64,000 bases of DNA from Octopus sinensis (GCF_006345805.1 NC_043005.1:20460001-20524000), one strand, 5' to 3'; positions 2,898 through 63,728 are shown, counted from the first letter of the stretch. A program made the numbers and translations. The notes: a model not told the origin generated them from the letters alone.

Positions 2898-3131
2898 CCA
2901 CTGATCATGTTTTTCAATTAAAAAAAGTTACCATAAGGGGGTATGATAATATTGGACGGCTTAAAAACATAGACCCAATGCAGTGTCATCAAGCATGTCA
3001 TGCATACTCAGGATGTTCATCTTATGAGTACAGTGAGACAACTAAGCAATGTGATCTGAGTAATGTGACTCACCTGACTCAAAAACTTGAACCCAGCAGT
3101 AAAGGTTGGGATATTTACATATTTAATCCAG
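2898..3131 (+). CDS. Exon PANa1: PAN/apple domain
   Basis: ttttttttccag|CC...AATCCAG|gtcagt; 234 nt; [77 protein letters not shown]; C-x3-C-x5-C-x11-C PAN core. Confidence 0.9.
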
Positions 3132-5522: not shown

Positions 5523-5576
<54 letters not shown>

Positions 5577-5612
5577 TACTATTATTATTATTATTACTAT
5601 TATTATCATTAC

Positions 5613-5679
<67 letters not shown>

Positions 5680-5853
5680 TAGTTTTATTTTTATAGCGTG
5701 CTTTCACTTCACTACCGAGCGCAGCTCTGTGTGCCTTGGGTATGTGCTGTGATTTGTTGTGATGCTCTGATGGTTATTGTATGGAAAGTGTTCTGCGTAG
5801 GATGTGTGCAGTGCCTAGTAGTGCAATTTTCTGTATGTTATATGTGTTTGTAA

Positions 5854-5891
<38 letters not shown>

Positions 5892-5912
5892 TATTATTAC
5901 TATTATTATTAC

Positions 5913-5974
<62 letters not shown>

Positions 5975-11900: not shown

Positions 11901-13337
11901 GATAAAGCAGGCAATTCTGGATGTATCAGGGAAATCAATGTGGTCTCCTAGAAGGAAAGGAGCAGAAAGCTGTGCAGAAAAATGTTTGAATAATGACGAA
12001 TGTTCATCATTTGAAGACTCAGAGGAGATGGGATATTGTTACCGATCAAAGGAAAGTGCAGCTACCTCCACGAAAATAGTGGAATTTGATGACAGAGATT
12101 ACTATCAAAAAATAGATCGTAATTATTCTTTGTATTTTATTATTAAACTCTTTTTTTTTTCTGAAATTTGTGATTACGTTTGTATTTCATTTTATGTAGA
12201 CCTACACTTCTGTAAAGACATTGTTAAATTTACCTATAAGGACAGACATAGTTACTGGAATATGACATGGTCCTTGGACCCTATAAGATCCTATCAAATT
12301 GTCCAAGCCATGTAAGCTTGAAACATAGACATTCAAAAATGATGATGGTGATGATGATATCAGGGCAATCTTATACAGCATTTGTTCACCCTAAATACTT
12401 TTTTTGCATCTTTTCAAATGTTTTTTGATGTAAGAAAGGCAAGTTTTGTTGTCTTTGTTAAACCTGAATAGTAGCAATAATAGAAGAAACAATAACTTTA
12501 TGTTCATTTTCCCATGTTGGCATTGTTTAAACTGTACTGTTACAAAACTGTCTCAAACCTAGTTGCTAGCCTTCAAAATCTAATATATATTATACATACA
12601 TACATACATACATACATACATACATACATACATACATACATACATGTATCCAATAAATCTAATTGGTGATGATTATTTGTATAAAACATAAGGAGAAGAG
12701 GTAAAAAATGGAAAAAAATTATCTTATACCACCTCTCTTTCTTTATATTTTATACACTCCTAATGAAATAATGTCTAACAAGTGGATTTATTGGATGGAT
12801 ACATACATACATACATACATACAAAACAAACAAACAAAATATAAAGAAAGAAAGGAGATATAAGATGAAAATAATTATTTCACCAATTGACATCCATACA
12901 ACTACGATCATTAAAAAAAAAAAGTGAAATGATCGTAGTTGTCAATTGTCAATTGGTGATATAATTTTTTTTAATCTTATACACTCCCAATGAAATAATC
13001 ATTACGAATAGGATTTATTGGATTTCAACTGCATTGGACTACAGATTACATCCCTTTATTTTGTTTTGGTTTACTATGTGGTTTGTAGCCTGATCCATTA
13101 AGAAGTTTTTTTTATGAGTATCACTAGATTAGTTAAATCCATATATTTTATAGTTTAAAAGTTTAATTTCTCTATCCTTAGAAAAAAAATTGTCTAACCT
13201 TACAAAAAATTTTTTAATGATCATAATAATCAAATAGTATTATCTGATACGACCCTCCCATTTATCACTGTATCCAAGATGTAGGAGGGAGCAAAGGAGA
13301 CACAGACTGTGACATCCCATATATTGTCCATTAAATT

Positions 13338-13378
<41 letters not shown>

Positions 13379-16300
13379 CTAGCAGTATTGCCTGGCGTTG
13401 CTCGGGTTTGTTTCGACCCTTTAGAATTGGAATTTTTGAAAAGTAAAACTGTTGTATTATGTAGCTCTTTAAGTGAACATTTTTCTGGTTGAAATACACC
13501 GAAAAATGGCGACACAGCAGTAAAAACCGTAAAAAATAGGGATTTTCATAGAAAAAAAGCACCTTTTTGATGTAAATAATTTTTGGTGTTAACATGGTCC
13601 AATTTGAATTTTTTCTTCTACGGAAGGAAGAGCAAGCCTTCTTCTATTATACTTTCAATTTTGGTCAGCTTGCGCTGCAGGGTCTCGGAGGAGATAGTGT
13701 TAGTTGAAGGCTACCAAACCTGCTATACACAGACAACTACAGCTTTATATATATATATATATATAAAGGGAAAGTTTGCGAAAATAAACAAAAGACGAAG
13801 GCAGGTGGTGTACAAACAAACAAATGTATTAGTATAGCGCTCAGGAATAGAAAAAGTCTTTTACGTTTCGAGCCTATGCTCTTCGACAGAAAGATACACA
13901 GAAAAAAACAAGGGGAGAAAAAAATGTGTGTAGTAGCTAACGATCTGTCATGGCATCTGACATCAGATGGAATGGTCAGCCACGAGAGGGACAGTAGGGG
14001 AGATAACAGGGTCAAGTGACTCCCAATACGAAGGAGCCCCCAACACAAAGGTGCGTGTGTGTATAAGAGATTATGTATGTGTGTGTGAAAGAGGGCTGGT
14101 GGTCTGGACGTGTGTGTGTATGTATGTGTGGGTTTAATATTATGATATATATATACACACACACACACATACATACATATATGGTGAGTATATAGGGATA
14201 AATTATCCAGACTGGTAAGTTAATAGCTCTTGGGAATATTCCAGGTTTTGACTAACCACATCAAGTAGTGATAAACATCAATGACAGCTTAGTATGAGCA
14301 ATCCTGCTGTAATTCTTCTGACATGTTAATCAAGGTTTGCATCCCTGAATTATTAATATTATCAGTCAATTACAAAGAGTTCAGAGACTAGTACATCTTC
14401 AAGATTTTCTTTTAATTTAATAGTTGGTTTTATAGCATAATTAGTTCGTTAACCCTTTTGTTACCAACCCGACCAAAACCAGCTCTGGCTCTGTAGTACA
14501 AATGTCTTGTTTTTATAAATTTTTCATTAAAATATACCACCAAACCTTAGTCGCAATTTATGTTCCTAACACTAGCTTAATGATAATTAAATTATTTTAC
14601 TAAATTCTTTGTTATATTTAAAATAATTGAAAGAAACACAGAGCATCTCAAAATAAATACAGTAATGAAAGGGTTAAAATGTCTGACATGTGTCTCTGTT
14701 GCAAAGAGTTGTATATGCAACCCAGCATATTCTGCTGTGCACCTTCATTAAGGGTCTTTCTACAAGCATGGTTTGAAGCAATCTGAGTTAATTAATTTTT
14801 TTGTGGCTAGTTTATTTCCTTATTCCGCCCTGTTTAAAATAGAAAAGGTAGTGATGGGGGATATACTGAAATCTGATTTGTCTATCCAGTTTATTTCTTA
14901 GCTGCCTGCAAATCAACTCTAGTTCCAGGGTGAAATTAGGAGTTTTATATATATTAAATTAGGTCAAAGTATATCAGAGTATTCTGTAGTGGATCTTGCA
15001 GTGGTGTGGATTCAATCCTAGATAGCCAAATTTAAATTAACAGTTCAACAGCACTTTTCTCACAGTAAAACAATAATTTTTCTGTGACAGTAGTTACATT
15101 TGCCACATGCCTTAGCTAAGCAAAATAATGTCTTTGCCACTTGACCCTTCTAACCTCTTCTATTTCACCAATAGCTAGAACAGAGATATCACAGACCTGC
15201 TTGTGGCCATGACTAGTTGTCCATTCACTAACTGACGGTCGCTCTTACTAATCCTGTTCTCACTAATTCCTTTTGCTTGGAGGTTCTTGTTTTTATAACT
15301 ATCCAGAAGGATAGACATATCGTTGAGAACAATAGATTTTGTTGGAGGTCTGTGATATCTCTATTCTAGCTATTGGTGAAATAGAAGGGGTTAGAAGGGT
15401 CAAGTGGCAAAAACATTATTTTGCTTAGCTAAGGCATCTGGCAAACGTAATTAGTCACAGAAAAACTATTGTATTACTGCAAGAAAAGTGCTGTTGAAGT
15501 GTTAATTTAAATTTGGCTATCTAGGATTGAATCTACACCAATAACTTTTTCTTTGTGTTAAAAGAGTTTGAATAAACATAATATTAAACTTAATTACATC
15601 GATAGATTTGAATCAAATATATATATATATATATATATGCATATGGACAAGGACAGTTGTGTAAAGGATTGTTACATATGGACAAGGATAGATGTGCTGA
15701 TCTCTCACTGTGGAAGAAGTAGATCCAAGAAGACATGAGATGAAGTGGTGAAACATGATCTTTGAGCTTTGGGTCATATGGAGACGATGACTAGTGACCA
15801 AAATCTTAGGTGATATGGTGTGCTTGAGAAGACCCATCAAGCCAAGTGAAATCATAATCACATAACTGGCACCCATGCCAGTGGCACATAAAAAGCACCC
15901 TTTGGGCCTTGGGGCTCACAGAGGCTATATGGTTGATGCCTGCTTTGCACAACTGTGCTGGTGCTGGTGCATGTAAAAAAGCACCTTTAGAGTGTTGGGC
16001 CTCACAGAGGCAATGACAAATGACCAAAACCTTCAGCAATATGCTATGCTTGAGTAGAAGACCTATCAAGCCAAGTGAAATCATAGTTGTAGCAGATACT
16101 GGTGTCATGTGAATGACACCCATGCCAGTGGCATGTAGCAGTACCCATTACACTCTTGGAGTGGTTGGTGTTAGGAAGGTCATCCAGCTGTAGAAACCAA
16201 GCCAAATCGGACTGGAATCTTGAGCTGTTTCTCAGCTTGTCAGCTCTAGTTGAACCGTCCAACCCATGCCAGTATGGACAATGAATGCTAAATGATGATG

Positions 16301-20079: not shown

Positions 20080-23000
20080 AAATATTTTTTAAACATTAAA
20101 AATAATTATCAAGTAGTGCCATTTAATTGAAATTATAAATAAAATGTTTGAAAGCCATCTGGTTTAATTTTTTTTAATGGACAGTTTTTTTTTATAAAAG
20201 CACAGTCCATCCACAACATTATTTTTTGGCATGAGACACTCTTCTCAGAATTCTTGTGAACTCTGCTAAGTCATGAGACATACTCAAAACTTCACATCAA
20301 TGTTTAGGCTGCAGTTAATCCATCAGAAGAGAAATTTATTCTGATGGTGTGCTTTGGTTTAAAACTGAATAATGGCACTTGACATGTTGGTTGATCACAA
20401 GTATAAGGGAAATTTTACCTTACAAAAGCATACCCTCAGAGGAAGAAGTACAAAAGGATTATTTACAATCTAAATATTGAAATAAAGTTTTGAGTAAGTC
20501 TCAAGATGTACTATTACTCACATGAATGCTGATGAGGATATGATTTTGCTGATCAAATATTTGTTTATAAAAAATTGTCCATTATTCTCCATGTGTGGTA
20601 TAATACTTAATATATGTTTGTAGAGTTTCTTTTGTGTGTGAGTGTGTGTGTGTGTATGTGTCTGACTGCCAGTCTTTCTGTTTTTATATGCATGTATGAG
20701 TATAATATGTATTTCTTGATTTTTTTCCAGCCTATGGTGAGGTTTTTGTATTTAAAAGAGTTCATATACCAGGGCAGGATAATTTTGAACAGTTTAAGAA
20801 CGTGGACTTAAAGAAGTGTCATGAAAAGTGCTTGAAACATCCGCAATGTTTTTCTTATGAGTACCATGAAAGAACGAAGGCCTGTGATCTGAGTAATGCA
20901 AATCATTTGAGTCATGATCTTAAGCCCAATGAAAAAGGTTGGGATATTTACATACTTAATCCAGGTCAGTTGCTTGTTTTCATTTTATTAATCATGTGTC
21001 CATTGTGTGTATTTATGTTTGTATACATCTGTGTGTGTGTGTATCAAATATATGCATATCTATGTATCTGTGTGTATATACATATGTGTATGTATATATA
21101 TAAACATATATGCCAGAATGGACAATGGATGTTAAATGATGATGATGACATTTATCTTCTTTAAATATAAAACTGAGAATGTGTGTCTGTCTGTCTGTCT
21201 GTCTATCTGTCTGTCTGTCTGTCTATCTGTCTGTCTGTGTGTTTCCCTAAAACTTGAGAACTGCACAACCAATTTCATTCAAATTTTACACATGCCTTAC
21301 CTAGGGTCCATGTAGTTTCATGGGCAAAAAAAATGTTCAACTTCTTGCCTAGAGCGAGCCCATAGCAATATCATATCTTCTCCACTATTTCAGTATTACG
21401 TGTTAAAAGTGAAACAAAAACATTTCTCTATTTCATGTCAGATACTTTCACTTTAACAATAAAAATAATAATAACAATTGAATTATATGCAGTAAGTAAT
21501 AATTAAAATCAAACTAAAGTATAATATAATCATAACATAACAAAAGTAAAAATAGCAATTGGTATAAAATTGCATCAATGACTTGAACTTGAATAAGTGG
21601 TTTCACATGAATGGAAATAAATTAAAAATAAAATTAGCATGCAGAAATGGAATAGTCCAGATGGATAATAAAAAATTAAATTAAAGAAAAGACTATTGTC
21701 TATAAAGTATACAATGTAGAGAAAAAAGAAGATTTGAAAACATGGAGGAAAGCACCTTCGAAAAGTGTCTTGGTGCGACTATGAAAGATATCTAATCAGA
21801 GGCAGTAAATTCGCCACAATAGAAGCAAGGTTCGAGTCAACGGAGCGTGCAAGGGAGTACTCGACTCGAACTTGCCAAGTGGAAATATTTTATTTTTACC
21901 TTTATATCTGGGACGTAGGACGTCCCGGAAAAAATTTAAAATGCCCCCCCCCAGAAGTAGAGGTAGGCTGGATTGTAGCCGCACTTCTATACAAGAGGGA
22001 GAACAAGATACAATTGATTGAAATTACAAGAGATGGGCTAACAATTCCAGAGTCTGTTATATATTTTGAGTATTGATATCACTGGCGATATCAAGATATA
22101 ACTTTGTATTTTGTATTTTATGTGTAGATGTATATATATATAGATGTACATGTAATATGTACACATTATATATACACATATATACATGCACTAGCACTAT
22201 GACCCGGCAACGATGGGTCTTTAATGCTAGTAATATATAATACAGGTGTGTGTGTGTGTGTGTGTGTGATGACCATTACTTGATCCCACGTAAAATCAAT
22301 ATTTTTTATCTAATTTCGTTCACACTTGGCAAATACATCACTTATGTTCCACAGATGGCTCTACACTATTTAGAGTTTTCACTTATGGAGTAATATGGAA
22401 TAATAGCGCTTCTAAGGTCAGAAGGTCTGTACTTTGCGAAATAACAGTCAGAAATTGATTGTTTCCCTTACACAGCAATAATCAAAAAAAAAAAAAAGGC
22501 CAGAAGGTCTGTACTCTGTGAAATAACAGTCAGAAATTGATTGTTTCCCTTACACAGCAATCATCAAAAAAGGTCGTAACCAGGAATTTTTGGTTGACAA
22601 TTGGTGGATCGTAGCCCACAAAAAGATGCTCTGCAAACCATTTCATGCACACATCAACATAGAATTCAATGACGAAAACCAGGCTAGCCTACACAGTTGG
22701 ATCCAGCCATGTACAAAGGCGACACAATCAGATGCGTCTACAGAGTTCAGCCCCTGAACTCCAAATGCTTCCATCTGCAGCTCTTACTTTATGTCATTAA
22801 GGGATCAATCTCCTTCAACAACCTTCGCACAATGGACGGCCACTTATGCGGCACTTATCCTGCTTCAAACTGATACAGATAATCAATATGATAATGCACT
22901 TGAAGAGGCCTCTCTGTGTCGTCCTCTGCACAAGCTCTGACACCTTTTCGCAATAATGCTGGTTTTCTGCAACCTGACAAATGCACATTCACTTTGGAAT

Positions 23001-28343: not shown

Positions 28344-31300
28344 TAGTGAATAGATAGGGATACAATTTCCAGGTGCGCACCATTCAAACATTTAATTATA
28401 ATCCATGTTAAGGCTAACCTCATCAGGTTATAATGAGCACCAAGAATTACTTGTGGTAAGCAATCCCACAGTTGGCAATAATGTTCATATCTTCAGCCTT
28501 GGTTTTGTACAGTCTATATTTGTTGTCTGTCAATGTTTACTGCCTATTACATTGCAAGTATTTGGTGGGGATCTCTTGTTCATGAATTGTTTGGCAATAG
28601 CCTTCAAAATGGGATGTCATAGACTTCTCAATACTCTATGTCAAACTCATTTTATAAGCAAATCCTTCTATAGCTTGTCTCTTTTGGGCCAAATACCCAT
28701 GTACTACTTGCTCAGTGAACTGGTTCATTTTTTAATTTCTTTTTTTTCTTTTTTTTTGATAAATATAATTTACCAGTGCTCATTGGAGAGAGATCTGTAT
28801 CAGCTCTTATTTCCTGCCTTTCCTCAAGCTCATTAGCTATTCTAGTTATGCTGTTGATCCTTGGTTAGAAACTTGGGCATCACAGTTACTCTGCTGCAGC
28901 TGTTGCTTCAGTGTCACAGTAAGGGTTTCGTATAACATCAATACAAATTTAAGATCATAGCCATCATCCTGTCTACCTCTCCACTGATGTTGGAGTCTCT
29001 AACAGCATGGAGCAGCTTGTGAGTTTGTACATCTATCTCACTGATTTCTTGTAATGACCAGTTCAGAAGGCCAAATGAAGACATGAAATCAGGCACTGCA
29101 AAGGTGTTGTGGATGATATGTTGAGAGTTCAGATGGCCTTATTTTTTTTTCTCTAACTTGAGGTACTCATTCCTTGTCCTTTCCTTATTGATGGATCTGT
29201 CTTGGCTGATATACTCTTCCTGTCCACATATCTGTAACTTTTCCCAGAGACCATGTTGTTTATATTCTAGGCTATTTAGTGTTTTGGATCAGGGCGCAAG
29301 CTTGCTATATGCTTTACCACCAAAAATGCACAGTAGGACACACAAAATTTCATTTCAAAATCTTTGGAAAATTGGGTTATGTCATCTAGTTGCTTTTTGG
29401 TGTGAATAGTACTTGGCCTATACAGGTGTGTGTGTGTGTGTGTGTGTGTGTGTATTTGTCTATGCATGCATATCTAGGTAGAAATTTCTTCAATCTGTTC
29501 TACACAGTATCTTTTATTGTAACATTATCATAATTTCCTTGTTCTCACATTTCTCCTCCTGACATACACACACACCATTCATGTCAATTTCTCTTGTTAA
29601 TCCCAGGTTATGCACTAATTGACTGTGGACATCCAAAAGAAGTTTTTGGTGCAGAGATGTTTTACAAAAGTGCCTCCTATAAATCTGAAGTGACCTACAC
29701 TTGCCCAGAGGGAGAAACAATAAAGGCAGTATGTGGAAAGGATAACAAATGGACAAGGGTACCACCTGTTTGTAAAGGTAAAGTAAATAAACTTTCTCTT
29801 GTTGCTTCTAAGTAATATTGTTTTATTTTTTATGAAATGTCTAAGTCAGAGGAAGCATGGTTGACTCCATGACAATTTCTACATAGTATTTTTGACTAGT
29901 GGGGGGAGAAGCAGATCTCTCCAAATGTTTGCAATAGAGTGAACTCCAGTAATTCTATCCCGAGGCCAGGTAATGGTATTCTATTGGGTGATGTATTACA
30001 TCTAACAACAAAGAACTAGAAGAATGGAAGCTTGTTCCGTCTGACAGGCTTCCATATAGTTTCTATCTTCCAGATTTCGTCCTTAGTTATAAAGCTAAGA
30101 TTTCATTCAATGCCACATTGTTGTGTAGTGAACTTATTAGACCCAATCTATGCTTGACCCATATCTAGGTAGTTTTCCTCTTTATTTCAGACTTGCTCTG
30201 TTTCACTCATACTTTTTGCCATCATCCAAATCCTTGTATAACATAATGGGCTGAGTCCTTCATTACTAGATTTTGGCTAACATCTGAAACAGCCTTTCGA
30301 TGCTGTAATGGTCTTCTAATCCCAAATATCAATAACAATAATGGTTTCTGATGTAGCCTCACATTTAAATTTTGATGTGACGGGTTAGTAAATACTATTG
30401 ATCCCAATACTTGACTAGTACTTTATGTTTTTGACCCCTGCAAGTGTGAAAGATAAAGTTTTTCTTGGTTGGATTTTAACTGAAAAATATAAAGAGCTTC
30501 AATACATAGCATGAAGAATTTCTTCCAATTCTTTAATGATTCTTTCACTTGACAACACTTCTGAGATAATAATAATAATGACTTCATTTATTTGTTTCTA
30601 GGACATCACACTGGATTGATAATACAAAGACAGACCCACATAACTTCTTCAATACAAATTAATTCATAATACATGTATTTGAAAATCTGTAAATAGCCAA
30701 AGTACTTACACAGTGCGAATGCTTCTTCCCCATCCATTCACCTATATATACATACTTACACACATATACCCACACACACACACATGCACACTCACACACA
30801 CACACACACACATAGATACATACACATATGCCTAATCACTGCTTTGCTTTGGTACTGTTGAATTTCTCCTGACTGAGGGAGGTCCAACAGTGCAACTTAG
30901 TCAATGTTGTTGACCGTGTTTTAGTTAAAGCTACAACCTTAAATCTGCTCAGGTTTACCTCTCTTCAGTATTTTCCATCGAGGAAGGGTAAAGAGCCAGA
31001 AATGCAGCATCAGAAAATCCAATAGTGGGCAACACTCGGCAGATATGGTGTTTTTACACCTTTTACCATTGAAGAGAATTTTTTCTCCGTGGTAACTGCA
31101 GTGAATTTGCCTTGAGAAGTTGAAATATGTCACAAACATATTTTAACTGACCTAAAGTTTACATATGCCTAATCACTGCTTGGTGCTCTTGCTATTGAAT
31201 GTGTGTGTCTGTGTGTGTGTATTGGATTGGAGCAAAAGTGTGTACTGTTTTTTAAGTAAAATGAAAAACCATCTTTTAGTTACTTGTATATACCTTTATT

Positions 31301-34300
31301 AAATTACACAAGTCCTTTTTGTTCCACTATCTTTTGCCAACCTTGAGACAGCTTCATGCTCCCATCCTCTCAGAACTTGGCATGTTTCTGGATCTAAGTA
31401 GTTTAAGAACTGGTCTACATGGTTTTTATAGTCATTCACAGAACTGAAGTTCTTCCCATTAAGAGAATTTTCTAGAGATCAAGATAAACAATAATCCAAG
31501 GGTACATGGTCAAGTGAGTATGGTAGGTATGGTAGGACATTCAAATCAAGTAGTACCAATTTCTATCAGGTGAGCAAAGAAACATGAGCATTGTTTTGAA
31601 GGAAGATGTTACTTTTCCAGCTGGTCAGTTCTGGATGTTTTTCATTGATTTCTTCCTTGAATTAGTCTTATTGGGAACAATAGTTGTCTGAATTCAACAG
31701 CTGATTTCGCAAAAGGAGTTTGTACTACTCTACTCAATTCTCTTTCAATCTCACCAGATACAAAGCATCACCTATTTTAGATACTGACTGGCCTTTAGAG
31801 TGATTAATGGTGGTTTATTTCGCTTTCTCATTCTTTAAAAAAAAAATGAGTCATTTTTTTTTACTGTGCTTGGGCAAGGAATTGCAAATGGAAATGTGGT
31901 CCATTAAATTTTCTTCTGTTAAATTATGAGGCACCCAAACAAAGCAGTTCCCATTTTCAAGTGTTTCTAAATACCTTATAATGTTTATATGAAATATGTA
32001 AAGTATCCCTGCAAAATCTTGTTTTGTGTAACCTGAATTATGGTTGAATAGCCTTTTGATTTGGTCGTCATGAATGACTAAAGGCCTTCTGGAATGTTCA
32101 GAGTCTTTCAAATCAAAATATTATTCATAGGCCTAACAAACCATTCCTGAACAGTTCTCTCAGTGATGACACCACCCTCATAAGCAGCACATATCTTTTT
32201 TGTTGTTTATGTAATGTCCTTTTTCTCTTTCTGGAAATGAAAGAGCATCAAATGATGAACATGTATCTCATTTTCTTCCATGTTTACTTTTTAATGTAGA
32301 AACTGTAGAAATAAGCTATCCACACAGTAATTGTATAGAAAGATGTATTGAAATTACACCTTTAAGAAAAAATATTTTTGTCATATGCTTTACCCACATG
32401 AGAAATGAAATCATGTGTTTAAATGCCACTGAAAATCAGAAAATTGTATGAACTTTCATTCAATCTCCAAAGCTTTAAGGTTGCCTTTCATGACATCCTT
32501 AAACCACTTCCTTGGTTTATGCTGAGGCTTTTTCTTGTTGGCCAGCTCCCATTAGCTTGCCTTCTATCTTCTATCCTGACAACTTTAGAAGCTTTATCTA
32601 AAGATGAACAAGACCAGTAACAGAGTTAAGCTCATGGACCACCGAGTCGGAATAAAAATATTGACATCAGTACCAAGCAGTGATGAAAAATATATGAACT
32701 GTAAATTAGTTGATACAGCTATTTTTATTCCAACCAGGTGATCCATGAGTGCTACTAAGTTACTGGTGTTGATTGTTTTTAGATTAAAGCTATGGATTTG
32801 AATCTGCCCAGGGTTATCTCTCTTTGGTATTTTTGTATTGAGGAAGGTTAAAATGCCAGGAATAGGCAGCTGGGATTCTGCTAGAGGGAGACACTGGGTA
32901 GGTATGGTGTTTTTACACCTTTTGCCATAAGAAAGAATTTTTTCTATTCAGTAACTGAAGTCAATCTGCCTTTAGAAGTTAAAATATGTCATAAGCATTT
33001 ACATTTTTTACAAACAACTTGCAGATGCAAGTACTATTGGATTTTAGCAAGCTCATGTGGTTATGAGGAGTGAATGTGCACTGTTTTAGGGCCTTGGCAT
33101 CATTGCACACCAGCCCTCCTTCCCCCTCACTGAAATGAGGCCCTGCTTGCTAGATTAACTGGTTATATATTTGAACTAACTTAAAATTCATTTCTTCTTC
33201 ATTACAGCTTGATACTGATACTTTTAAAATCTAAGTACTGGTGTTGTCTGTCTCTTTTCAATATATATTTCTTTACTACCCACAAGGGGCTAAACACAGA
33301 GGGAACAAACAAGGACAGATAAACGGATTAAGTCGATTATATCGACTCCAGTGCGTAACTGGTACTTAATTTATCGACCCCGAAAGGATGAAAGGCAAAG
33401 TCGACCTTGGCGAAATTTGAACCCAGAATGTAACGCCAGACGAAATACGGCTATGCATTTCTCCCGGCATGCTAACGTTTCTGTCAGCTCGCCGCCTTTT
33501 CAATATAGATTAGTTGTAACAATTTCTTTCCTTTAATTACTAGAATGTTCAAAATAGGAAGTTCTCTTTCACTCATGTTCATAGAGAATTGGACCAATGA
33601 TTGCTATTTATCAATTTAAGGAATCTTATAAGTTCTGTTGCGAAAGATAGAGTAAGCACTCAAGAATCTTTTCTAGTTTTCTTTTAAATGGAATTAGAAA
33701 TAATGATCCAAAGCAATCATAGAACAGGCATTAATTTTTTCTTTTTACCTTCAAGGAATCGCATTACCAGTGTATGTATGAATTTATACCTGTATGGTTA
33801 GTGAGAGCTGTGCGGGCCATGTATAGGGACGCCGCTAGTAGGGTGAGGGTTGGAAATGAGTACAGTGAAGAATTCCGGGTAGAGGTAGGGGTCCACCAAG
33901 GCTCAGTACTCAGCCCCCTCCTATTTATCATAGTCCTCCAGGCAATAACGGAGGAATTCAAGACAGGATGCCCTTGGGAGCTCCTCTATGCTGATGACCT
34001 TGCTCTAATTGCTGAGTCGCTATCAGAACTGGAGGAGAAGTTTCAGGTGTGGAAACAAGGATTAGAATCGAAGGGCCTCAGAGTCAATCTAGCTAAAACC
34101 AAAGTCGTAATCAGTAGGAAGGTAGACAAATCACAAACACCTTCAGGTAGATGGCCCTGCTCGATCTGTAGAAAAGGTGTAGATAGAAACTCTATAAGAT
34201 GCACCAAGTGTAAGCTATGGACACATAAGAGATGCAGCAATGTCAAAGGAAGGCTAACTAGGAAGATGGTTTTTGTATGTGGCAGATGCTCAGGAACAAT

Positions 34301-37300
34301 AAACACTGAAAATGCTCTGAGACCAACTTCCGTCACTTTCCAGGGAGAAAAACTAGAAATAGTTGATAGTTTCCGTTACCTAGGTGACCAAGTCAGCAGC
34401 GGGGGCGGGTGTGCTGAAAGTGTAACTGCTAGAGTAAGAATAGCTTGGGCAAAGTTCAGAGAGCTCTTACCTCTGCTGGTGACAAAAGGCCTCTCGCACA
34501 GAGTGAAAGGCAGACTGTATGATGCGTGTGTACGAACAGCCATGCTACATGGCAGTGAAACATGGGCCTTGACTGCTGAGGATATGCGTAAGCTCGCTAG
34601 AAATGAAGCCAGTATGCTCCGATGGATGTGTAATGCCGGTACTCACACTCGGCAGAGTGTAAGTACCTTGAGAGAAAAGCTGGACCTAAGAAGCATCAGT
34701 TGTGGTGTGCAAGAGAGACGTTTGCGCTGGTATGGTCATGTGGCGAGAATGGATGAAGATAGTTGTGTGAAAAAGTGCCACACCCTAGCGGTTGAGGGAA
34801 CCTGTGGAAGAGGCAGACCAGGAAAACCTGGGACGAGGTGGTGAAGCACGACCTTCGAACTTTAGGTCTCACTGAGGAAATGACTAGAGACCGAGACCTC
34901 TGGAAGTGTGCTGTGCGTGAGAAGACCCGGCAGGACAAGTGAGTCCACAACCCGTGGCCTTCTACATGGGATGGAGCCAGCCTACGTATGCATACCTTCC
35001 CTTCTTGGGACACAAAACTCTACTTGTGAAGACGTGTTGAGGCAAGTGAGGATCAGAATCGAAATCGATCAATGGAAATTGCGGATGTGCTACCAGTGCC
35101 GGTGGCATGTCGAAACTCTGCTTGTGAAGACCCATTGAGGCAAGTGAGGATCAGAATCGAAATCGATCAATGGAAATCGATCAATGGAAATTGCAGATGT
35201 GTTACCAGTGCCGGTGGCATGTAAGAGAACTTTCCGTTTCGCGACCGTTGCCAGCACCGCCCCGTTTCGTGTCCGTTGCCAGCCTCGCCTGGCCCTCGTG
35301 CCGGTGGCACATAAAAAGCACCATCCGTTCGTGGCCGTTTGCCAGCTCTGTCTGGCACCAGTGCGGGTGGCACGTAAAAAGCACCCACTACACTCACGGA
35401 GTGGTTGGCGTTTAGGAAGGGCATCCAGCCGTAGAAACACTGCCAGATTTGACTGGGCCTGATGAAGCCTTCTGGCTTCACAGACCCCAGTAGAACCGTC
35501 CAACCCATGCTAGCATGGAAAACGGACGCTAAATGATGATGATGATGATGATGATGATGATGCATGTTGCTTCAATCTGTTTCACTAAATATCTTTTATT
35601 GTAGTATTATTATCAATTCTTTTTTCTTAACCACCTCCAAACATACATGTACAACTGATATCAATTTCTGTTACCAATTTCAGCTTATGAAAAAGTTAAC
35701 TGTGGACCCCCAATGTATGTTGTTGGGGCACTTCAGTCTTCCAAAACCAGCACCTATAAATCAAAAGTTTACTATACTTGCCTAAACGAAGACAAGTTGA
35801 TCTCAGTATGTGAAAAGGACAGCAAATGGGTACCGGTGGCTGGTTGTAAAGGTAAAGTAAATAAACTTTCTCTTGTTGCTTCTAAGTAATATAGTTTTAT
35901 TTTTTTATGAAATGTCTAAGTCAGAGGAAGCATGGTTGACTCCATGACAATTTCTACATAGTATTTTTGACTAGTGGGGGGAGAAGCAGTTATTCTCAGA
36001 CCTGAGACCTCTCCAAATGTTTGCAATAGAGTGAACTCCAGTAATTCTATCCTGAGGCCAGGTAATGGTATTCTATTGGGTGATGTATTACATCTAACAA
36101 CAAAGAACTAGAAGAATGGAAGCTTATTCCTTCTGACAGGCTTCCATATAGTTTCTATCTTCCAGATTTCGTCCTTAGTTATAAAGCTAAGATTTCATTC
36201 AATGCCACATTGTTGTGTAGTGAACTTATTAGACCTAATCTATGCTTGACCCATATCTAGGTAGTTTTCCTCTTTATTTCAGACTTACTCTGTTTCACTC
36301 ATACTTTATGTCATCATCCAAATCTCTGTATAACGTAATGGGCTGAATCCTTCATTACTAGATTTTGGCTAACATCTGAAACAGCCTTTCAATGCATGCA
36401 CTGAAGTCCCCATTCACTCTTGCCCTTTTTGACATGTACACCCAGCTGTCAATAATTTCACTTTGGGACAGTACTGCCCTCTCCATCTTCACCGTCTTCA
36501 CAAGTGAAGTCTAAAGATGCTGAACCAAAGAGGAAAGTATCTATCACCATATCTTTCAACCTGATCCATGACACAAATTCTTTTGAAAACAGAAGAAAGC
36601 TGCATTCTCTTTCCTATTAAAGCAGGGTGTAGGACAATCATCATGATGAACTTGGTTGACAACAATATCCCTCCCTACACAGCAGCGTCTCTTTGACATA
36701 ACTCTACAGGGTGTCTCAAAATTAAGGCAACCAAGGCTTTAATAATTATCAATAAATATGATAAGATATGAAAGTTATACATCATTATAAAAGCTTAGTG
36801 TGTCTTCTTTTGTTTCAGACTAAATAAATTCAGATTTATAAATTAGATAATGGCTATAGACCGAAATACAATCATAATCCTTCACAAAAGAGGTGAAAGT
36901 AATAGAGCTATAGCAAAACAGCTTAAAATTAACTGAACAACAGTCTGAAAAATTGTCAAGAAATTTCAAGAGACTGTCCAAGCACTGTTCATCCTAGATG
37001 TGGCTGAAAAGGAAGTGTGCAGATCCCTCTGCTTATTAAAATACCAGAGAAAAAATACAGCAAAATCCTTGTCTTCCAACACGAAACTGGCTGCCACAGC
37101 AAAAATAAGCCAAACATCGATGTATCAAGTGCTGAAGGAGGATATCAGAACCCACCCCTACAAGATGATCTGCCGTCATGAGCTCATGCAAATTTATAAG
37201 GCCATGAAACTAGAAAGAATCGTCTTATCCTGCATTAGATTGCTGAAGGCATGCTACCCAATCTAGTGTTCACTGACAAAAAGAAATTTGACATCAATCA

Positions 37301-40300
37301 GACAGCAAATTATATGAATTACTGACTTTGGAGTGTATCTGACTCTGTCAAAGGTAGACTTGTAAATTGATGTCAAAATCCACCGTCAGTTATAATTTTG
37401 GCAGCTGTCACAGTCACTGGAAGGTCTTCCCTTGTTTTTGTGCCCTTGGGTGTTAAAATTAACACCCAGTGATAGATTAGTGACATTCTGGAAGCTGACC
37501 TGCTTCCATGGGTGAATGAGCACTTTCAAGGTGCACCCGGGAGCCTGCAGCAGGATTCAGCATCATCCCACTGCTACGAACACAGACACAGCACTGGATT
37601 CAGAAAAACATTTTGTCGCTCATAGGCAAGAATGTATGGCTCTCAAGAAGCCCCAATTTCAACCTGTTGGATTTTCCTGTTTGGTTCATTTTGGAGACGA
37701 GGGTTTTGAGCACTCCTTATGCTTCTCTCAATGCTCTTAAGGCAAAACTGTGCCAGAAATGGGCTTCAATTTCACAAGAACAGTTGCGTACCACATGTGA
37801 AGCATTTGCACCTAGACTTAAGGCTATGATTCAAAATAGAGAAGGTCATATCAAATAAATGTGGTAGTGTCATAATTGTATTTCCTTTACTATTGCATTG
37901 CAATGCTTGGACCCAAAATATAACAATATTTTGATTTGATAAAATTGAAAAAAGTTGGTTGCCTTAATTTTGGGACACCCTGTATTTGTCAGCAATGCAC
38001 AAACAATGAATGAGTGCATTAAAAAGGATTTTGGTGTCCTCTGTGTATTTCAAACAGACCTGACTAATGGTATTCCAATGATTGAAGAGTTTATCTTGGA
38101 CTGGTGGAGTGCTTTAGTAGCAATGATAAGCCAATGACTTCAGAAAGTTGTCCATAATATTGTCAAAAGATCCTTTGAAACAAACTTGCTTGTTTATTTC
38201 CATGAATTCCCAAAGGGCTTTTTTGAGAATGTCAGTGCTTTTTCCCTTCACTAACCCTCAACAGGTTCTTTGATTGGGACATTCACCAGTTCCATTACCC
38301 ATTTCAGGTTTGATCTAGCATATGTTATATGTAATCCTTAGGCTTACTTTAGATAAAATGGTCTTCCCTTTTTTAAGAATGTGGTAAGGCAATTGAAGAT
38401 GATTTTGTTAATATTTCTGATATGTTGAGTGAATTCATAGGGGCTTCCACAGTGGCTGATCCACTGTGAATTTTGAACTTCATATTGCAAGCAGATCTGA
38501 CGTAGCTTATCTTCTGGTATAATTTGTTGCCTTGTTCAACATCACCACCTGGCCTTTAGATGGTCATGGCAATGGTGCTGGATAGTTTTTAGTCAATATC
38601 ACTATATTTATTACAATAACAAACACTCAAATTGACCCACAGTTGCTCATCTTGGGCATGAATGACATGAATCTCACAAGTATAGGAGGGAGGGTGGCCT
38701 GAAAATTTCATGGCATTGATGTTTCTCCCAGTACTAGCTTATTAATAAAATCAAAAATCCTACCTCATTGTAATTACTAATGTATTCATTGTTTAGGCAC
38801 ATGGCCAAATACTATGAGAGAGAGGGAAATGAGACTATGTAATAACCATGTCATTCTAAAGAACATTATTGTCTATGTAAAGTAAACTGACTTAGATGAG
38901 AGTCAAACCTAGATTTTTGACGCCACATTTATACTAAAGAAAAACTAGGGAAAAAATACTGAGAGTCACATACTGCATGGAAAGCAAATAGTAAACTGGT
39001 TACTTATTGAATGAAGATAATAAGATTAATTAATATTTTTCCCTCAGTGTATGTTAAAATCATTATGTTGGTGAGTTATTCGGATTAATAATTTCAGAGG
39101 AGATAACAGCATAAAGATAATCACTTTTCTTTTTCATCTCACTAAAAGTATAATTTTGATGAGCAATATTCCTTAGCTTACTATCTCAAGTTTTGACTGA
39201 TCACCTTTATTACATATTACATTAATTCCCTAGATAATGGTGTAAGTTAAGTTATTTTAATTTTTCCCTGCCAAAATCAGTAAAGGGATGGGTTATAGTC
39301 CTTGCTGTGACTAGACATATTTTATTACATCTGTTTACATTCTGGGTCCAAATCATTCCTCAATGCACTTCACCACTCATATTTCTTTGGTTGATAAAAT
39401 AAGCATTACTCAAGTAGTAAGAATGATATATTTTCATGTTTCCTCACTGCAGAATCTGTGGCCTTGTGTTTAAGTTAGGAACAATTATCATTAAAATTGT
39501 TAGCTTCAACAATAATTATAATTATTCTTGTTAAGAAGAGTGATAGACTGACAGAATCATTCATGGATCAGGAAATAAAATGTGTTGTGGTATTTGTACT
39601 GGCTCATTGACTTCTGCTTATGATGATTTTCTCTTTCCAGGGATCCAGTTTAATTAATTGACATGTACCTCAAACTTTGCCCTACTGTCTATGTTAGACA
39701 TTATCATTGTTGTTGTTGTTGTTGTTGTTGTTGTCGTCGTCGTCGTCGTTGCTGCTGCTGCTGCTGCTGTTGTTGTTGTTGTTGTTAATCTTCATTAGTC
39801 TAAATCTTATTTTAAATGTAGGTGCTCTGGTCAATTTCGTGAGAGTAAAAAATGGAGCTCTGAATGTGAAAAATAAAAAATTGTGGCATAATAAAAATGG
39901 AACAGCAGAAGACTGTGCAAAGAAATGTTGGTCTGACAAAAGTTGTTTGTCATTTGAAGTGATTAGAAAATCTACAAAATGTTACCTATTAAAAGAAAGT
40001 GCACTTTCCACGAGGAGAATGACAACAGACATAAACAGAGATTACTATCAACGAGTAGAACGTAATTATTCTTTATGTTATATAATTGGACTCGCCTTCT
40101 TTTTCTGAAATTTGTGATTATATTTATGTATCTTAGTAGACAGACAAACACTCTTGTAAAAACATTGACAGGTTTACCTATAAGGACAGATATAGACATG
40201 TTCCAGAAAAAGAGGAAGCGATGCTTAGGGAATTCTCAAACAGCATTTGTTGATTTTGAACAATTTATGTATATTTTCAATTGCACTTTTTCTATGTAAG

Positions 40301-43841: not shown

Positions 43842-43890
<49 letters not shown>

Positions 43891-43931
43891 TATTATTATT
43901 ATTATTATCGTTATTATTATCGTTATTATTA

Positions 43932-43986
<55 letters not shown>

Positions 43987-44700
43987 TATTATTATTTATA
44001 TGTTGTTTAAAAAGTTTAGATAATAATGTAGAAGCATCATGTAATTGAAATTTTGAATAAAATATTAGAAAGCCACCTGGTGCACAATTTTTTTAAATGG
44101 ATAATTTATCATAAAAACACAATCCATCCACAAAATTATTCTTTGGTATAAAACACCTTCATCAGAATTCATGGAATTTCTGTTGCATCATAAAACATAC
44201 TTGAAAATTTGCCTTAAAGTTGCAGATAATCCCAAGCTTGGTGTGCTTTGGCTTAAGATTCAATGGCCATAGCAACACTTAAGTCATTAGTTTAAGGAAG
44301 TTTTGACTCTGCAAAAGTACACCATCAGAAAAGGGATGCATAAATGGATTATTTGCAATATATTTGTTAAAACGAGGTTTCAAGTAGATCTCAAAATGAA
44401 CTACAACTGACATGAATACTGACTAGGATTACATATTGATCAAATATTCATTTGATCTATATTCATTTACAATAACTTGTCTATTTAAAAGATTATGCAC
44501 CACATGATTTATAATATTTAGGATATATAAGTGGTGTGTATATATATATATATATATATAACGATTGTAGTGTTATACTCATTATCTTTTTTTAATAATT
44601 TTGATATATATTTAAAATAATATTAATTAATTAATCTTATGTATTGGCTTACGTTTTTCATTGTATGATTTACCCAATAGTGGCCTTTATCTCTAATTTA

Positions 44701-44794
<94 letters not shown>

Positions 44795-45313
44795 TATATG
44801 TATGTGTGTGTGTGTGTATATGTGTGAAAGCATGAGTGTGTGTGCACATGCATGTGTGTGGATGTGTATGAGTATAAAATGTATTTCTTTCCCTTTTGTT
44901 TTTCCAGCTGATGCTAACATGATTGCATTAAAAGCAGTAGGCATACCAGGACAGGATAATATTGGACGGCATGATAGTGTGGACGTAAAGGCATGCAATA
45001 AAGCTTGCCTTGAATATACAGGATGTACTTCTTATGAGTACAATGATAAATCTCAATACTGTGATTTAAGTAATGTGACTCATGCAACTCATGAACTTAA
45101 ACCCAACACTGCAGGTTGGGATATTTACATCTTAAATCCAGGTTAGTAGAATATTTTCTCATTTTATCCTTTGCATGTCTGTTTGTATTTACATACCTGA
45201 ATATGTATATAATACATATGAATATAATATATATGTATATATACATATATGTATGTATATGTGTATATATGTGTGTATGTGTATGTATGTATGAATATAT
45301 ATATATATGTATA

Positions 45314-48826: not shown

Positions 48827-51800
48827 AGTGTGTATGTGTGTGTGAGTGTGTGTGTGTGTGTGTATGGCCATTCCTCAATGGAAAGGAGGCCAGTCGATTA
48901 GATTGACTCCAGTATGCAACTGGTACTTAATTTATCGACCCCAAAAAGATGAAAGGTAAAGTCGACCTCAGTGGAATTTGAACTCAGAATGTAAAGACAG
49001 ATGAAATACCACTAAGCATTTCACTTGGCGTGTGAGCGTTTTTGCCAGCTCGCCACCTTTAAATATATTGAGTATATTATGAAAAACCTGTCCTGTTTTG
49101 TTTTCCACACTATGTTTGTTTGTGTGAATGTATTTTTGTGTTTTCTTCAATATGAAGTAGGGCAGCATAAAATTTTAGAGAATATTATGTAGCGTGATTT
49201 TGATTGCAGGAAATATCTATATGAGAAAGAGTAGTTGGTACAAGTAATAGTTGGTATCTTTCATTTAAATAACAAAGAATTTTGTTCATTGAACTATTGA
49301 GGATATGAAGATGTGGGAAACACTTGTGTATGAAAAATTGACTCTGATATGCTTAAAATATCTAGCAGAGTAGACTAGAATCTAGTTCCTCAATTATCAA
49401 ACTAAATAATATGGGAATGTTATATGCAAGGACTAGAAATGCATTATAAAGGGTAATAAAGGCAATGGAAATACATAGAATAAGGAGACTACAAGAGCAT
49501 CAAATTTTCAAACATAGCCAACTGCTACAAAGGTAAAGGTGACGCTTTAGACTGGTATAGCAGCACCATAGTCAACTGCTACAAAGGTAAAGGTGACGCT
49601 TTAGGTACAAATAATTACAGAGGTATCAAGTTGTTGGATCAGGTAATGAAGGTCACGGCAAGGTCATAGCCCAACTATTTAGGGAGAGAGTCAGTTTAGA
49701 CGAGATGCAGTTTGGGTTCATGCCAGGGAATTGCACCACTAATGCTATATTTCTGGTAAGACAGCTGCAGGAGAAATACCTAACCAAAGATAAACCTCTG
49801 TACCTGGCTTTCATTGACATGAAGAAAGCCTTTGACAGGGTCCCCCCGATCCCATATCTGGTGGTCAATGAGGAACCTAGGGTTAAGGCAACCTGTGGAA
49901 GCTATCCTCATCCATTCTCACTACATCACCACAGCTATCTCTCTTTCACACCACATCTGATACTTCTATGGTCCAACTTTTCTCTCAAGGTACTTAAACT
50001 CTGTCGAGTATGCACACTGACATTACACATCCAGCGGAGCATACTGGCTTCATTCCTTGCAAGCTTACGCATGTCCTCAGCAGTCACGGTCCATGTTTCA
50101 CTGCCATATGGTGGTTTAGGGAACCTGTGGATGAGGTGGTGAAGCACGACTTTCAAACATTAGGCCTCAGTGAGGCAATGACTATTGACCGAAATATGCT
50201 GTGCTTGAGAAGACCAGGCAAGCTAAGTGAGACCATAACCTGTGGCCTATTCCAGGGGTTTAACCAGCCCTCTTATCTGTACCTTTCCTTCATTGGACAC
50301 TAAACTTTGCTTGCGAAGACCTGTTGAGGTAAGTGAAATCGAAATCGAAATCAAATTTGATGACTGGCATCTGTGCCAGTGGAGCACTAAAAGCATCATC
50401 CTAGCATGATCGTTGCCAGAGCAGCTGACTGGCTTCCGTGCCAGTGGCACATAAAAAGCACCATTCAAGCATGATTGTTACCAGCATCGCCTTACTGGCA
50501 CTTGTGCCCTAGTGAATGTGAAAACTATTGCAGCAAGGGTCATCAGCAGTGCCGCCTGGGACTGGTTCCTGTGCAGATGGCATGTTAAAAAAAAACCATT
50601 TGACTTGCCCTCGTGCTGGTGGCACGTAAAAGCACCCACTACACTCTCGGAGTGGTTGGCGTTAAGGAAGGGCATCCAGCTGTAGAAACTCTGTCAGATC
50701 AGATTGGGGCCTGGCGCAGCCATATGGTTCGCCAGTCCTCAGTCAAATCGTCCAACCCATGCCAGCATGGAAAGCGGACATTAAACGATGATGATGATGA
50801 TGTTTGAAGTGTATCAAAGACTAAGAGAGGATTTGCAATCATTCTCTGATGATTATGTAATGTTAGTGTGCATGAATAGAAGAGTAAAAATGAGCAAAGG
50901 AAAAGCTATATATAATAGAATCTAATATGATGTGAAGAAAAAAAAAACTTCTATGGTTCAGGCATATGATGCATATAGAGAATGATTGCTATATAAGAAA
51001 TTGTCAAGTGATCAAACTGAACAAAATTTGCAGAAAAGGGAGACTGAGGAAGACTCAAGACAAAACAGAGAAGACAAAAGATGATGATAATTGGTGTTAT
51101 GTAAAGCTGCAGTAACCTGATGAAATGTACATTAGAAACAGCTGTGTTGAACAATGTGTGTGGGTGTATTTATATCTCTGTGCAACTTGCTTCACTCAAT
51201 AAATTTCATTGTAAACCTGTTATGTTCTCATTCTCATCCTCCTCCTAACATACTTTCACCATTAGTGTCAATTTCTGTCATCAATCAAGAAGATGATGAT
51301 GATAATTGGTGTTATGTAAAGCTGCAGTAACATGATGAAATGTACATTAGAAACAGCTGTGTTGAACAATGTGTGTGGGTGTATTTAATCTCTGTGCCAA
51401 CTTGCTTACTCAATAAATTTCATTGTAAACCTGTTATGTTCTCATTCTCATCCTCCTCCTAACATACTTTCACCATTAGTGTCAATTTCTGTCATCAATT
51501 CCAGCTTATGTGCAAGTTAAATGTGGACCTCCAAAAGATGTTGCTCTTGGCAAAAAGGCCTACACTACCACCAGATACAAATCTGAGGTGACTTATACTT
51601 GTGATGATGGAAATCAATATAAGTTGACATGTGAAAAGGACAGTAAATGGAGTCCCATAACATTTTCTTGCAAAGGTAACGTAAACAGCTTTTCTCTATT
51701 TGCCTCTGTCTATGTGACTTTTTAAAAAGAGTTTAAATTATGTGTTTTTGTCAGAAGAAAGTTGACTCTTCATACATACATCTTCTTTGCCCATTTAATG

Positions 51801-52766
51801 CCAGAATGGGAGAGGGGAAAGAATCCTCAAGCATACCTTTCATGAGATCCTGTCAGAAGCAACTGTCTTCTGTTAGACCCCAAGACTAGCCAAGCACATG
51901 CATGTTATCCAAGCACCTTGCTCGTGGTTTATTCCTGGGTCTCCTGCCTGTTGGTTTTGCCTGTAAAACAAGTCTTTCCCAATACAATCTTACCACATGC
52001 CCATATTATCAGAGTTGTGATCTCTTAATTTGGAGACATTGTGGCTCCACCTGGAGTGACACACCGATTTCTGAGCTACACATTCTATCGAGAACATTAC
52101 TCCTATGTCCCTTTGGTGTGAACCCCATCTTGACCACTTGTATTGGTGATCGTATTGCTTCAGTCATCCCATGAGTTATGACCACAGGTAAGGATAGGCT
52201 TAAATACCAATTATTCAGCATTTGCACTTACTTCTCTTCTGATGATGATGGAATGTTGAAACTGGCACATTACTGCCCCAGCTCCTGTAATTCTTGCACA
52301 TGCATCACAACCACATGTGTATGACATGGTGACCTCCTATCATAAAAAAAAAATGCATAATCTTACATGTGGAACCCAGTTAGAACTTTTTTCAGATTGA
52401 CTGGCTCATCCTACTCAAAAGGTCCCTAAATAAGGTTTGTTTAAGGATGATGAACAAAACACCCACGTTTCCAGAGGCAAATTATTCAAACCCCAAAGAA
52501 TTTCTTTTGAAACATGGTTATGAAATTCCTCACAACTCCTGTTCATGGTCAGAAAAGCACATATCATCAGCCACTGAAGGACATACTCAACTGAATAAGG
52601 TCAAGCAACTGACAAGCAAATCTGTAGTATTGAGTAGAATATTTGCAATAGCCCACCTTTTACACCAAGACAAAGCATATACATGTTAACACTTCCAATC
52701 AGTTAAAATCAGAAGCCATGAGAGCCACTGCTTGTTACTGTATCATGGCATTATTATTATTATTAC

Positions 52767-52820
<54 letters not shown>

Positions 52821-55368: not shown

Positions 55369-55429
<61 letters not shown>

Positions 55430-63673: not shown

Positions 63674-63728
<55 letters not shown>

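Follow-up and report, generated by a model that had tools for sequence, protein, structure and literature searches.

The window analysed here is the whole of a 64,000-nucleotide (nt) stretch of the Octopus sinensis genome (GCF_006345805.1, NC_043005.1:20460001-20524000) and covers, as judged from its sequence, a portion of a gene that probably belongs to the octopus PAN/CCP(sushi)/GON family and is built of repeated CCP-PAN-PAN modules. In two of these modules the CCP exon occurs twice, 5-6 kb apart, each time as a unit with ~120 nt of the intron before it and 0.5 kb or more of the intron after it. Both pairs of copies (exons E2/E3 and E4/E5) are mosaics, in which a diverged exon with its upstream flank is followed by a nearly identical stretch of intron. 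The best explanation is probably a short-patch, non-allelic (intragenic) gene conversion which was confined to the downstream intron. The window thereby provides a clean, twice-repeated case of paralogous exons and adjoining introns with different histories inside one gene.

The units were compared by global alignment, and mismatches were counted separately for flank, exon and intron (coordinates in Table 1). The exons E2 and E3 differ at 54 of 168 aligned nt (67.9% identity, divergence K 0.42) and at 31 of 55 residues, and this recount agrees with the numbers of an initial annotation of the region. According to the Nei-Gojobori method, 12.0 synonymous differences (Sd) fall on 34.5 synonymous sites, which corresponds to a synonymous divergence (dS) of 0.47 and a nonsynonymous divergence (dN) of 0.42. 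The upstream flanks are homologous for ~117 nt only and carry 35 mismatches over these 117 positions (70.1% identity, K 0.38), in line with the earlier observation that the acceptor side is diverged as well. Directly downstream of the exons, the intron tracts I2 and I3 are 97.3% identical with 14 substitutions in 526 ungapped columns (K 0.027), plus one 1-nt and one 17-nt indel. The near-identity of about 97% given in the initial annotation is thereby retained, with 14 substitutions instead of 13 and with 36395 instead of 36394 as the end of the second copy. The 17 nt, located at 35988-36004 in I3 and absent from I2, are kept by the E1 and E3 units, so that the indel is a deletion in I2.

The last mismatch between E2 and E3 ahead of the tract is found at position 29769, 8 nt before the exon end, and identity runs from TTGTAAAG|GTAAAG, as had been described. 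A maximum chi-square scan sets the switch after 29769, with 89 mismatches in 277 positions to the left and 14 in 534 to the right (Fisher p 5.5e-32), which gives the previously noted switch a statistical basis. At the other end the homology stops abruptly at 30303/36395. The two tracts have lengths of 526 and 544 nt, are located 6.1 kb apart and have unrelated spacers.

The E4/E5 pair repeats the mosaic beyond the coordinates covered by the initial annotation (51370-52299 versus 56644-57580). Here, the exons are 72.7% identical (dS 0.49, dN 0.30), while the upstream flanks show a K of 0.18 and are each other's closest relatives (84%). The tracts I4 and I5 are 96.6% identical over 623 nt with 21 substitutions plus indels; the copies comprise 624 and 627 nt, lie 5.3 kb apart and again have unrelated spacers. 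The maximum chi-square method placed the breakpoint after 51660, 15 nt short of the exon's end (67/285 versus 21/638 mismatches, Fisher p 3.4e-20). Moving away from the exon, the number of mismatches per 100 nt between I4 and I5 is 8, 5, 5, 1, 1, 1, and 0, so that the divergence of this pair is highest at the exon and falls off on both sides. In both pairs the 5′ limit of the tract lies within the last 8-15 nt of the exon. The mosaic structure, its significance and its recurrence are direct observations.

To place these values within the family, CCP units were collected from the window and, in addition, from seven loci belonging to O. sinensis, O. vulgaris, and O. bimaculoides. The resulting 40 units gave 553 comparable pairs. 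The mean identities over these pairs are 72.8% for the exon, 72.7% for the upstream flank and 71.0% for the downstream intron, and exons and adjoining introns of the family diverge alike in ordinary paralogue pairs. The E2/E3 and E4/E5 units (W2/W3 and W4/W5) are extreme outliers: their intron identity exceeds the exon identity by 29 and 22 percentage points, respectively, and the next of the 553 pairs reaches +10.5. Furthermore, the nearest neighbours of the exons and flanks in the window differ from the nearest neighbours of the tracts.

A yardstick of neutral divergence was obtained from orthologous units of O. vulgaris and O. bimaculoides (V1-V6 versus B1-B6, loci L002/L003), whose CCP exons are 90-95% and whose introns are mostly 93-95% identical. 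The exons of these orthologues show a dS of 0.082 and a dN of 0.065 (dN/dS 0.79). Since the exons are no better conserved than the introns and dN/dS amounts to 0.79, the CCP domains seem to evolve nearly neutrally at the protein level. The corresponding ratios inside the window are 0.90 for E2/E3 and 0.62 for E4/E5. With K values of 0.027-0.034, the two tracts have reached roughly a third to half of the neutral divergence between O. vulgaris and O. bimaculoides, and were therefore last homogenised well after the split of these two species.

The I2/I3 tract is homologous, with 63-77% identity, to the intron directly following almost all CCP exons of the family in the three species, and it is closest to the intron behind E1 (77-79%). 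Because of this family-wide homology, the tract can be recognised directly from the alignments as ancestral intron and not as a transposon; an origin from a transposon or dispersed repeat was rejected, as the tract matches only introns following CCP exons in ~465 kb of octopus DNA. The situation is different for I4/I5, which besides its partner has one weak match (66-67%) in the same ~465 kb. Only its first ~46 nt belong to the ancestral family intron, and the remainder is lineage-specific and common to both copies.

The ancestral intron has the segment order A-B-B2-C, which is visible after E1 and, further downstream, after E5. I2 runs from segment A into segment B, but in I3 segment A is fused to segment C, and the tract therefore stops where colinear homology stops. 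By this order of segments, the A-C junction in I3 is recognisable as a deletion breakpoint, which marks the 3′ end of the tract and provides a structural cause for this boundary. In the second pair, near-identity between I4 and I5 ends where a dispersed repeat begins at 52298.

This dispersed repeat belongs to a family with an internal array, which matches itself at many 3-nt offsets; the family is present in the window at 1404-2123, 5391-5981, 43843-44004, 52296-53223, 54765-55436, and 63634-64000. The spacer between the E2 and E3 units is largely transposon-derived, and a fragment of a reverse transcriptase of the long interspersed nuclear element (LINE) type was found in the E2-E3 intron (33790-35100, + strand), which is 83-90% identical to copies in the O. 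sinensis and O. vulgaris loci. Overall, transposon fragments common to the window and other octopus DNA are 83-92% identical, which agrees with an origin in or near Octopus. Microsatellites are located exactly at the onset of unit homology, namely (GT)n at 29428-29454 for E2, (GAT)n at 35536-35562 for E3 and (GT/GC)n at ~56590-56660 for E5.

The initial annotation had proposed gene conversion or unequal crossover for E2/E3. The two age blocks (K ~0.4 and 0.027) agree with the former, whereas a crossover would leave near-identity over the whole 6-kb spacing. As the near-identity covers 0.5-0.6 kb of a spacing of 5-6 kb, the tracts are to be regarded as conversion tracts and not as products of a recent tandem duplication or unequal crossover, both of which were rejected since identity is absent across the spacer.

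It is hardly conceivable that the pairs were duplicated recently and that positive selection then accelerated the evolution of the exon alone, as described for gene families of the venom gland in which introns are conserved. Such a course would suit a family that includes GON-Abd-1 and GON-SepT-2, named from transcriptomes of the cephalopod posterior salivary (venom) gland, and would suit the high dN/dS of 0.6-0.9. However, this ratio is not above 1, and the synonymous divergence of 0.47-0.49 is ~15 times the divergence of the tracts. The argument of the initial annotation that diverged synonymous sites speak against selection on a recent duplicate is borne out by the dS of 0.47 and is reinforced by the non-coding upstream flank of E2/E3, whose divergence matches that of the exon (K 0.38 versus 0.42). 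It follows that the exon block is of real age and not just fast-evolving; the flank rules out an acceleration specific to the exon, and the explanation is largely refuted by it.

With gene conversion confined to the intron, the duplicates of the CCP unit would be old (K of flank plus exon 0.2-0.4, dS ~0.5), and a recent non-allelic conversion would have copied the intron just downstream of one exon over its counterpart. This would be a homology-directed repair using the sister unit as template, by which 0.5-0.6 kb were reset to a K of ~0.03. The 3′ end of the tract would be set by the loss of colinear homology, due to the deletion breakpoint in I3 and the start of the dispersed repeat in I4. 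The exclusion of the exon could result either from selection that keeps two CCP domains of different function from being homogenised or from the ~30% mismatch of the exons, which would block heteroduplex extension. A mismatch barrier of this kind would also isolate the short upstream flank behind the exon. Mismatch-limited heteroduplex extension is as good a reason for the sparing of the exon as protective selection. We infer both the direction of the event, i.e., that the intron was homogenised and not the exon block replaced, and the reason for the exclusion of the exon. The I2/I3 tract is colinear with the ancestral sequence and would replace a homologous segment, which for I4/I5 is true of the first ~46 nt only. 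In the latter pair, the cline of divergence and the sister relationship of the upstream flanks mean that recurrent conversion around a segment resisting it would fit.

Several points weigh against this explanation. A near-identical tract is missing in five other tandem CCP pairs (V1/V2, V4/V5, B1/B2, B4/B5, and C2/C3), in four of which the downstream introns are ~67-74% identical, those of C2/C3 being essentially unalignable. With regard to the direction of the mosaic, the exon blocks of E2 and E3 are not mutual closest relatives: E2 shares 79% identity with the exons of C2, C3, and T4 versus 68% with that of E3. The orthologous locus was not found in the protein database or in the loci L001-L007; the classic proof of conversion would be tracts that cluster by species and exons that cluster by orthology. 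Conversion between introns which were previously ~70-75% identical is mechanistically unfavourable and would be easier if homogenisation had been continuous since the duplication. Beyond +46, I4/I5 is not ancestral and now has no homology flanking its 3′ side, which makes a simple one-off conversion awkward there. Finally, dN/dS values of 0.6-0.9 give no positive sign of selection protecting the exons. The claim of the initial annotation that selection kept the exons distinct is accordingly not upheld: the near-neutral ratios (0.9, 0.62, and 0.79) give no signal either way, and conversion patches cover exons elsewhere in the family (D1/D5/C3, see below).

The mosaic could also have been formed in the opposite direction. 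Each pair would then be a young dispersed duplicate of ~1 kb (K ~0.03), in which flank and exon of one copy were subsequently overwritten, through conversion, by a diverged CCP unit from another place in the large gene cluster. This is as parsimonious as conversion of the intron, with one event per pair and an identical junction, and patches covering exons between distant paralogues do exist (D1/D5/C3). In addition, each pair has one exon (E2, E5) that resembles its partner less than it does consensus-type exons from other genes (79%), and the presence of the lineage-specific I4/I5 sequence in both copies is easily explained by a young duplication. On the other hand, a search among the 40 units, a sample drawn from a much larger cluster, gave no donor of more than 82% identity for any block of the window. 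A single overwrite does not predict that the W4/W5 flanks are mutual nearest relatives, with a K of 0.18 lying between those of exon and tract. Moreover, ~1 kb would have to be copied 5-6 kb away twice, and each time be overwritten up to the same exon end, which requires more coincidences. Overwriting of the exon block is thus regarded as unlikely, and conversion of the intron is preferred.

The initial annotation had mentioned a shared splicing selector element as an alternative. More generally, the tract could be a functional RNA or DNA element held identical by selection, such as a selector of mutually exclusive exons, an intronic enhancer or a non-coding RNA. The exons of each pair indeed have the same phase and nearly equal lengths (171/168 and 171/165 nt), and they occupy a position that holds only one CCP in module 1 and in several paralogues. 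A docking complement to either tract was searched in its own pre-mRNA region by blastn-short on the minus strand, in comparison with 60 dinucleotide shuffles and scoring only Watson-Crick matches. The best reverse-complement matches comprise 12 and 13 nt and are no better than those of the shuffles, as they were equalled or surpassed by 45/60 and 13/60 of them, respectively. Excess RNA structure is also missing in the tracts (folding z-scores +0.34 and +0.72), and no Rfam family was matched at gathering thresholds. The homologous intron is ~71% identical in the family and thereby no better kept than exons or flanks, and between orthologues it evolves like other intron sequence; the five other tandem CCP pairs have ordinary introns. 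A selector would need tens of nt and not 525-625. Two consecutive CCPs are present in annotated proteins of the family (relatives P0003, P0004, and P0007) and in the squid protein P0010, which is derived from a transcript. Mutually exclusive use of E2/E3 and E4/E5 had first been favoured, based on the single CCP per module in paralogues and in module 1, but was weakened by these tandem-CCP proteins. A functional element is considered very improbable, and the selector proposal receives no support.

An assembly artefact, in which the tract was placed twice through mis-assembly or haplotype mixing, has to be considered as the region is rich in repeats and the units are flanked by microsatellites. 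However, 14 substitutions and a 17-nt indel separate the copies of one pair, 21 substitutions and indels those of the other, and every copy continues into an exon and a distal intron of its own. A haplotig duplication would have doubled the exon, too, at 98-99% identity, and the pattern is seen twice. The chance of such an artefact is judged to be very small. Leaving it aside, conversion confined to the intron is the explanation which is followed here.

Conversion patches were also identified elsewhere in the family by a sliding-window survey of pairs of CCP units from the same source. The O. bimaculoides units D1 (L007 1167-1320), D5 (L007 28502-28655), and C3 (L004 5294-5447), the latter located ~0.5 Mb away, have patches of 126-150 nt in common, which are ~94-95% identical, with a perfect run of ~165 nt between D5 and C3. 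The patches start in the middle of the exon, cover the 3′ two-thirds of it and end 16-21 nt into the intron. Their flanks are ~70% identical or unalignable, and the pairs have a dS of 0.08-0.21 compared to a flank K of 0.22-0.50 (mostly 0.33-0.43). From their sequences, they are to be taken as exon-covering conversion patches and represent a mirror image of the mosaic in the window. On the strength of these alignments, short-patch conversion is demonstrably active in the octopus PAN/CCP/GON family, whose cluster is an active arena of this process.

Every high-identity patch found has one junction within ~20 nt of the 5′ splice site. In 17 of 150 pairs of paralogous units, the longest stretch of exact identity lies at the conserved motif TGTAAAG|GTAA, which spans the exon end and the 5′ splice site; this frequency is about double the expectation and lends weak support to a role of the motif as microhomology anchor. 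Conversion might even be systematically anchored at the 3′ ends of CCP exons, and as a second possibility E2/E3 and E4/E5 might be alternative exons; this proposal is rather doubtful. If true, a recombination hotspot at the exon end or selection at the domain boundary would make exon and following intron independently exchangeable cassettes. This would be a mechanism to diversify or homogenise single domains in a fast-evolving family of secreted proteins.

A comparable pattern was described for the L/M opsin genes of gibbons, in which the divergence between paralogues is higher in exons than in introns, also at synonymous sites, and conversion tracts are mostly intronic (PMC3213168). It was explained by conversion together with selection against the homogenisation of exons (PMC3213168). 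The octopus exons likewise exceed the introns in divergence with synonymous sites included, as in the gibbon L/M opsins (PMC3213168). In contrast to the opsins, where the partners are two genes, the partners in octopus are two exon units in one gene. The octopus exons are ~30% diverged with a dN/dS near 1 and no known selected site, whereas opsin exons differ by a few per cent and their spectral tuning sites are known. Moreover, the contrast is far larger in octopus (~30% versus 3%) and occurs twice in one gene, but it is known from a single assembly. No new mechanism is required, since the phenomenon is well documented for opsin genes and genes of the major histocompatibility complex (MHC).

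In HLA class I and DRB genes, recombination or conversion within the locus homogenises the introns that lie beside highly diverged exons, without removing the diversity of the exons themselves. These are alleles or lineages at polymorphic loci under balancing selection, unlike the fixed tandem exon duplicates of the octopus, which come from a single assembly. The phospholipase A2 genes of snake venom have introns which are far more alike than the coding sequence, and their synonymous sites are also more diverged than the introns. The octopus gene resembles them in belonging to a family linked to the venom or salivary gland and in having introns more alike than exons. However, all non-coding sequence is conserved in the phospholipase A2 genes, whereas the contrast in octopus is one between 5′ and 3′ blocks, with an upstream flank that has diverged to the same degree as the exon. 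Mutually exclusive exon clusters, such as those of Dscam1 and 14-3-3 zeta, have a docking site and selector sequences beside the variant exons. As in the octopus pairs, their homologous exons lie in tandem, agree in phase and nearly in length, and each has a copy of a repeated element in the intron beside it. They differ in that no complementary docking site was found in octopus, the element has 0.5-0.6 kb and not tens of nt, and the inclusion of both exons keeps the frame, in accordance with the tandem CCPs of family proteins.

The different histories have consequences for dating, as in this family the similarity of introns is no guide to the age of an exon duplication, nor that of exons to the age of an event in the intron. 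Additionally, short-read assembly and read mapping can easily be misled by near-identical intron copies of 0.5 kb at a distance of 5-6 kb.

The host gene was delimited by tblastn with relatives and by family matches (Table 1). The composition of the window is eukaryotic, with 31-46% G+C per 2-kb window (mostly 31-40%), microsatellites and long introns. Five CCP (sushi) exons of phase 1-1 with AG/GT splice sites were identified on the + strand, and four cysteines and one tryptophan are kept in all five. Concatenated, they match Pfam Sushi PF00084 with an E-value of 1.1e-15 (one stretch above threshold). The order of exons is PANb, E1, PANa, PANb, E2, E3, PANa, PANb, E4, E5, PANa, with a single CCP in module 1 as in several paralogues. 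E3 is the most diverged CCP exon sampled and is at most 75% identical to any other.

Table 1. Features of the host gene in the window, probably of the PAN/CCP/GON family. The limits of the PAN (apple) exons are approximate, as they are derived from tblastn.
Feature	Position	Strand	Remarks
Host gene fragment	2903-61642	+	tblastn with relatives and family matches
PANb exon, 5′ of E1	2903-3130	+	tblastn
CCP exon E1	7247-7417	+	
E1 with downstream intron	7247-8438	+	outgroup closest to the I2/I3 tract; with segments A, B, and B2
PANa exon, after E1	11878-12123	+	tblastn
PANb exon, before E2	20739-20963	+	tblastn
Upstream intron flank of E2	29485-29606	+	5′ limit of homology with the E3 unit; directly after (GT)n microsatellite
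CCP/sushi exon E2	29607-29777	+	171 nt, phase 1-1, AG/GT, four Cys and Trp
Near-identical intron tract, copy 1 (I2, segment A)	29778-30303	+	97.3% versus 35852-36395
Segment B of ancestral intron	30304-30640	+	after E2, E1 (~7885-8239), and E5 (59140-59256); missing after E3
Upstream intron flank of E3	35567-35683	+	directly after (GAT)n microsatellite
CCP/sushi exon E3	35684-35851	+	168 nt, phase 1-1
Near-identical intron tract, copy 2 (I3, segment A)	35852-36395	+	includes 17 nt (35988-36004) lost from I2
Segment C of ancestral intron	36396-36576	+	fused directly to segment A in I3; 68.6% versus 59571-59756 downstream of E5
PANa exon, after E3	39824-40066	+	tblastn
PANb exon, before E4	44889-45140	+	tblastn
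Upstream intron flank of E4	51370-51504	+	83.7% versus 56644-56788
CCP/sushi exon E4	51505-51675	+	171 nt, phase 1-1
Second near-identical tract, copy 1 (I4)	51676-52299	+	96.6% versus 56954-57580
Upstream intron flank of E5	56644-56788	+	83.7% versus 51370-51504
CCP/sushi exon E5	56789-56953	+	165 nt, phase 1-1
Second near-identical tract, copy 2 (I5)	56954-57580	+	ancestral intron back only at ~58711
PANa exon, after E5	61388-61642	+	tblastn

The best protein matches are octopus proteins of the same PAN/CCP architecture with 41-50% identity, among them O. bimaculoides LOC106869402, which has a GON domain at its end, and gene models of O. vulgaris and O. sinensis. Weaker matches are GON-Abd-1 from Abdopus and GON-SepT-2 from a squid. 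A GON exon is not present within the window, which covers an internal part of the gene only. The gene's own product or orthologue was not found in the protein database (best matches 33-50% identity) or in the seven fetched loci. One of these, O. vulgaris OX597823.1 at ~24.177 Mb (L006 85532-94990), contains the start of a gene with an annotated PAN and sushi product of 3597 amino acids. This protein did not appear in the protein searches, though smaller relatives were matched, and its gene could be a candidate for the window gene or its orthologue.

Some further observations concern single exons and introns of the gene. The start of E5 reads cag|GTAAGG (56789-56800), the first bases of which resemble a consensus 5′ splice site. 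Its 5′ end is 6 nt shorter than that of the other CCP exons, and the motif CGPP is changed to CKTP. Beside E4, a head-to-tail duplication of ~207 nt with 98% identity (51080-51285 and 51295-51499) copies the flank of the 3′ splice site. The first copy ends with tgtcatcaat followed by caagaa, without acceptor or exon, and the second one continues to tccag|E4. This duplication is a very recent local event adjoining a converted unit. Finally, an inverted repeat of ~197 nt with 93% identity is located in the PANa-PANb intron (15002-15198 and 15346-15540), the arms of which are ~150 nt apart and which could be hairpin-forming or resemble a miniature inverted-repeat transposable element (MITE).

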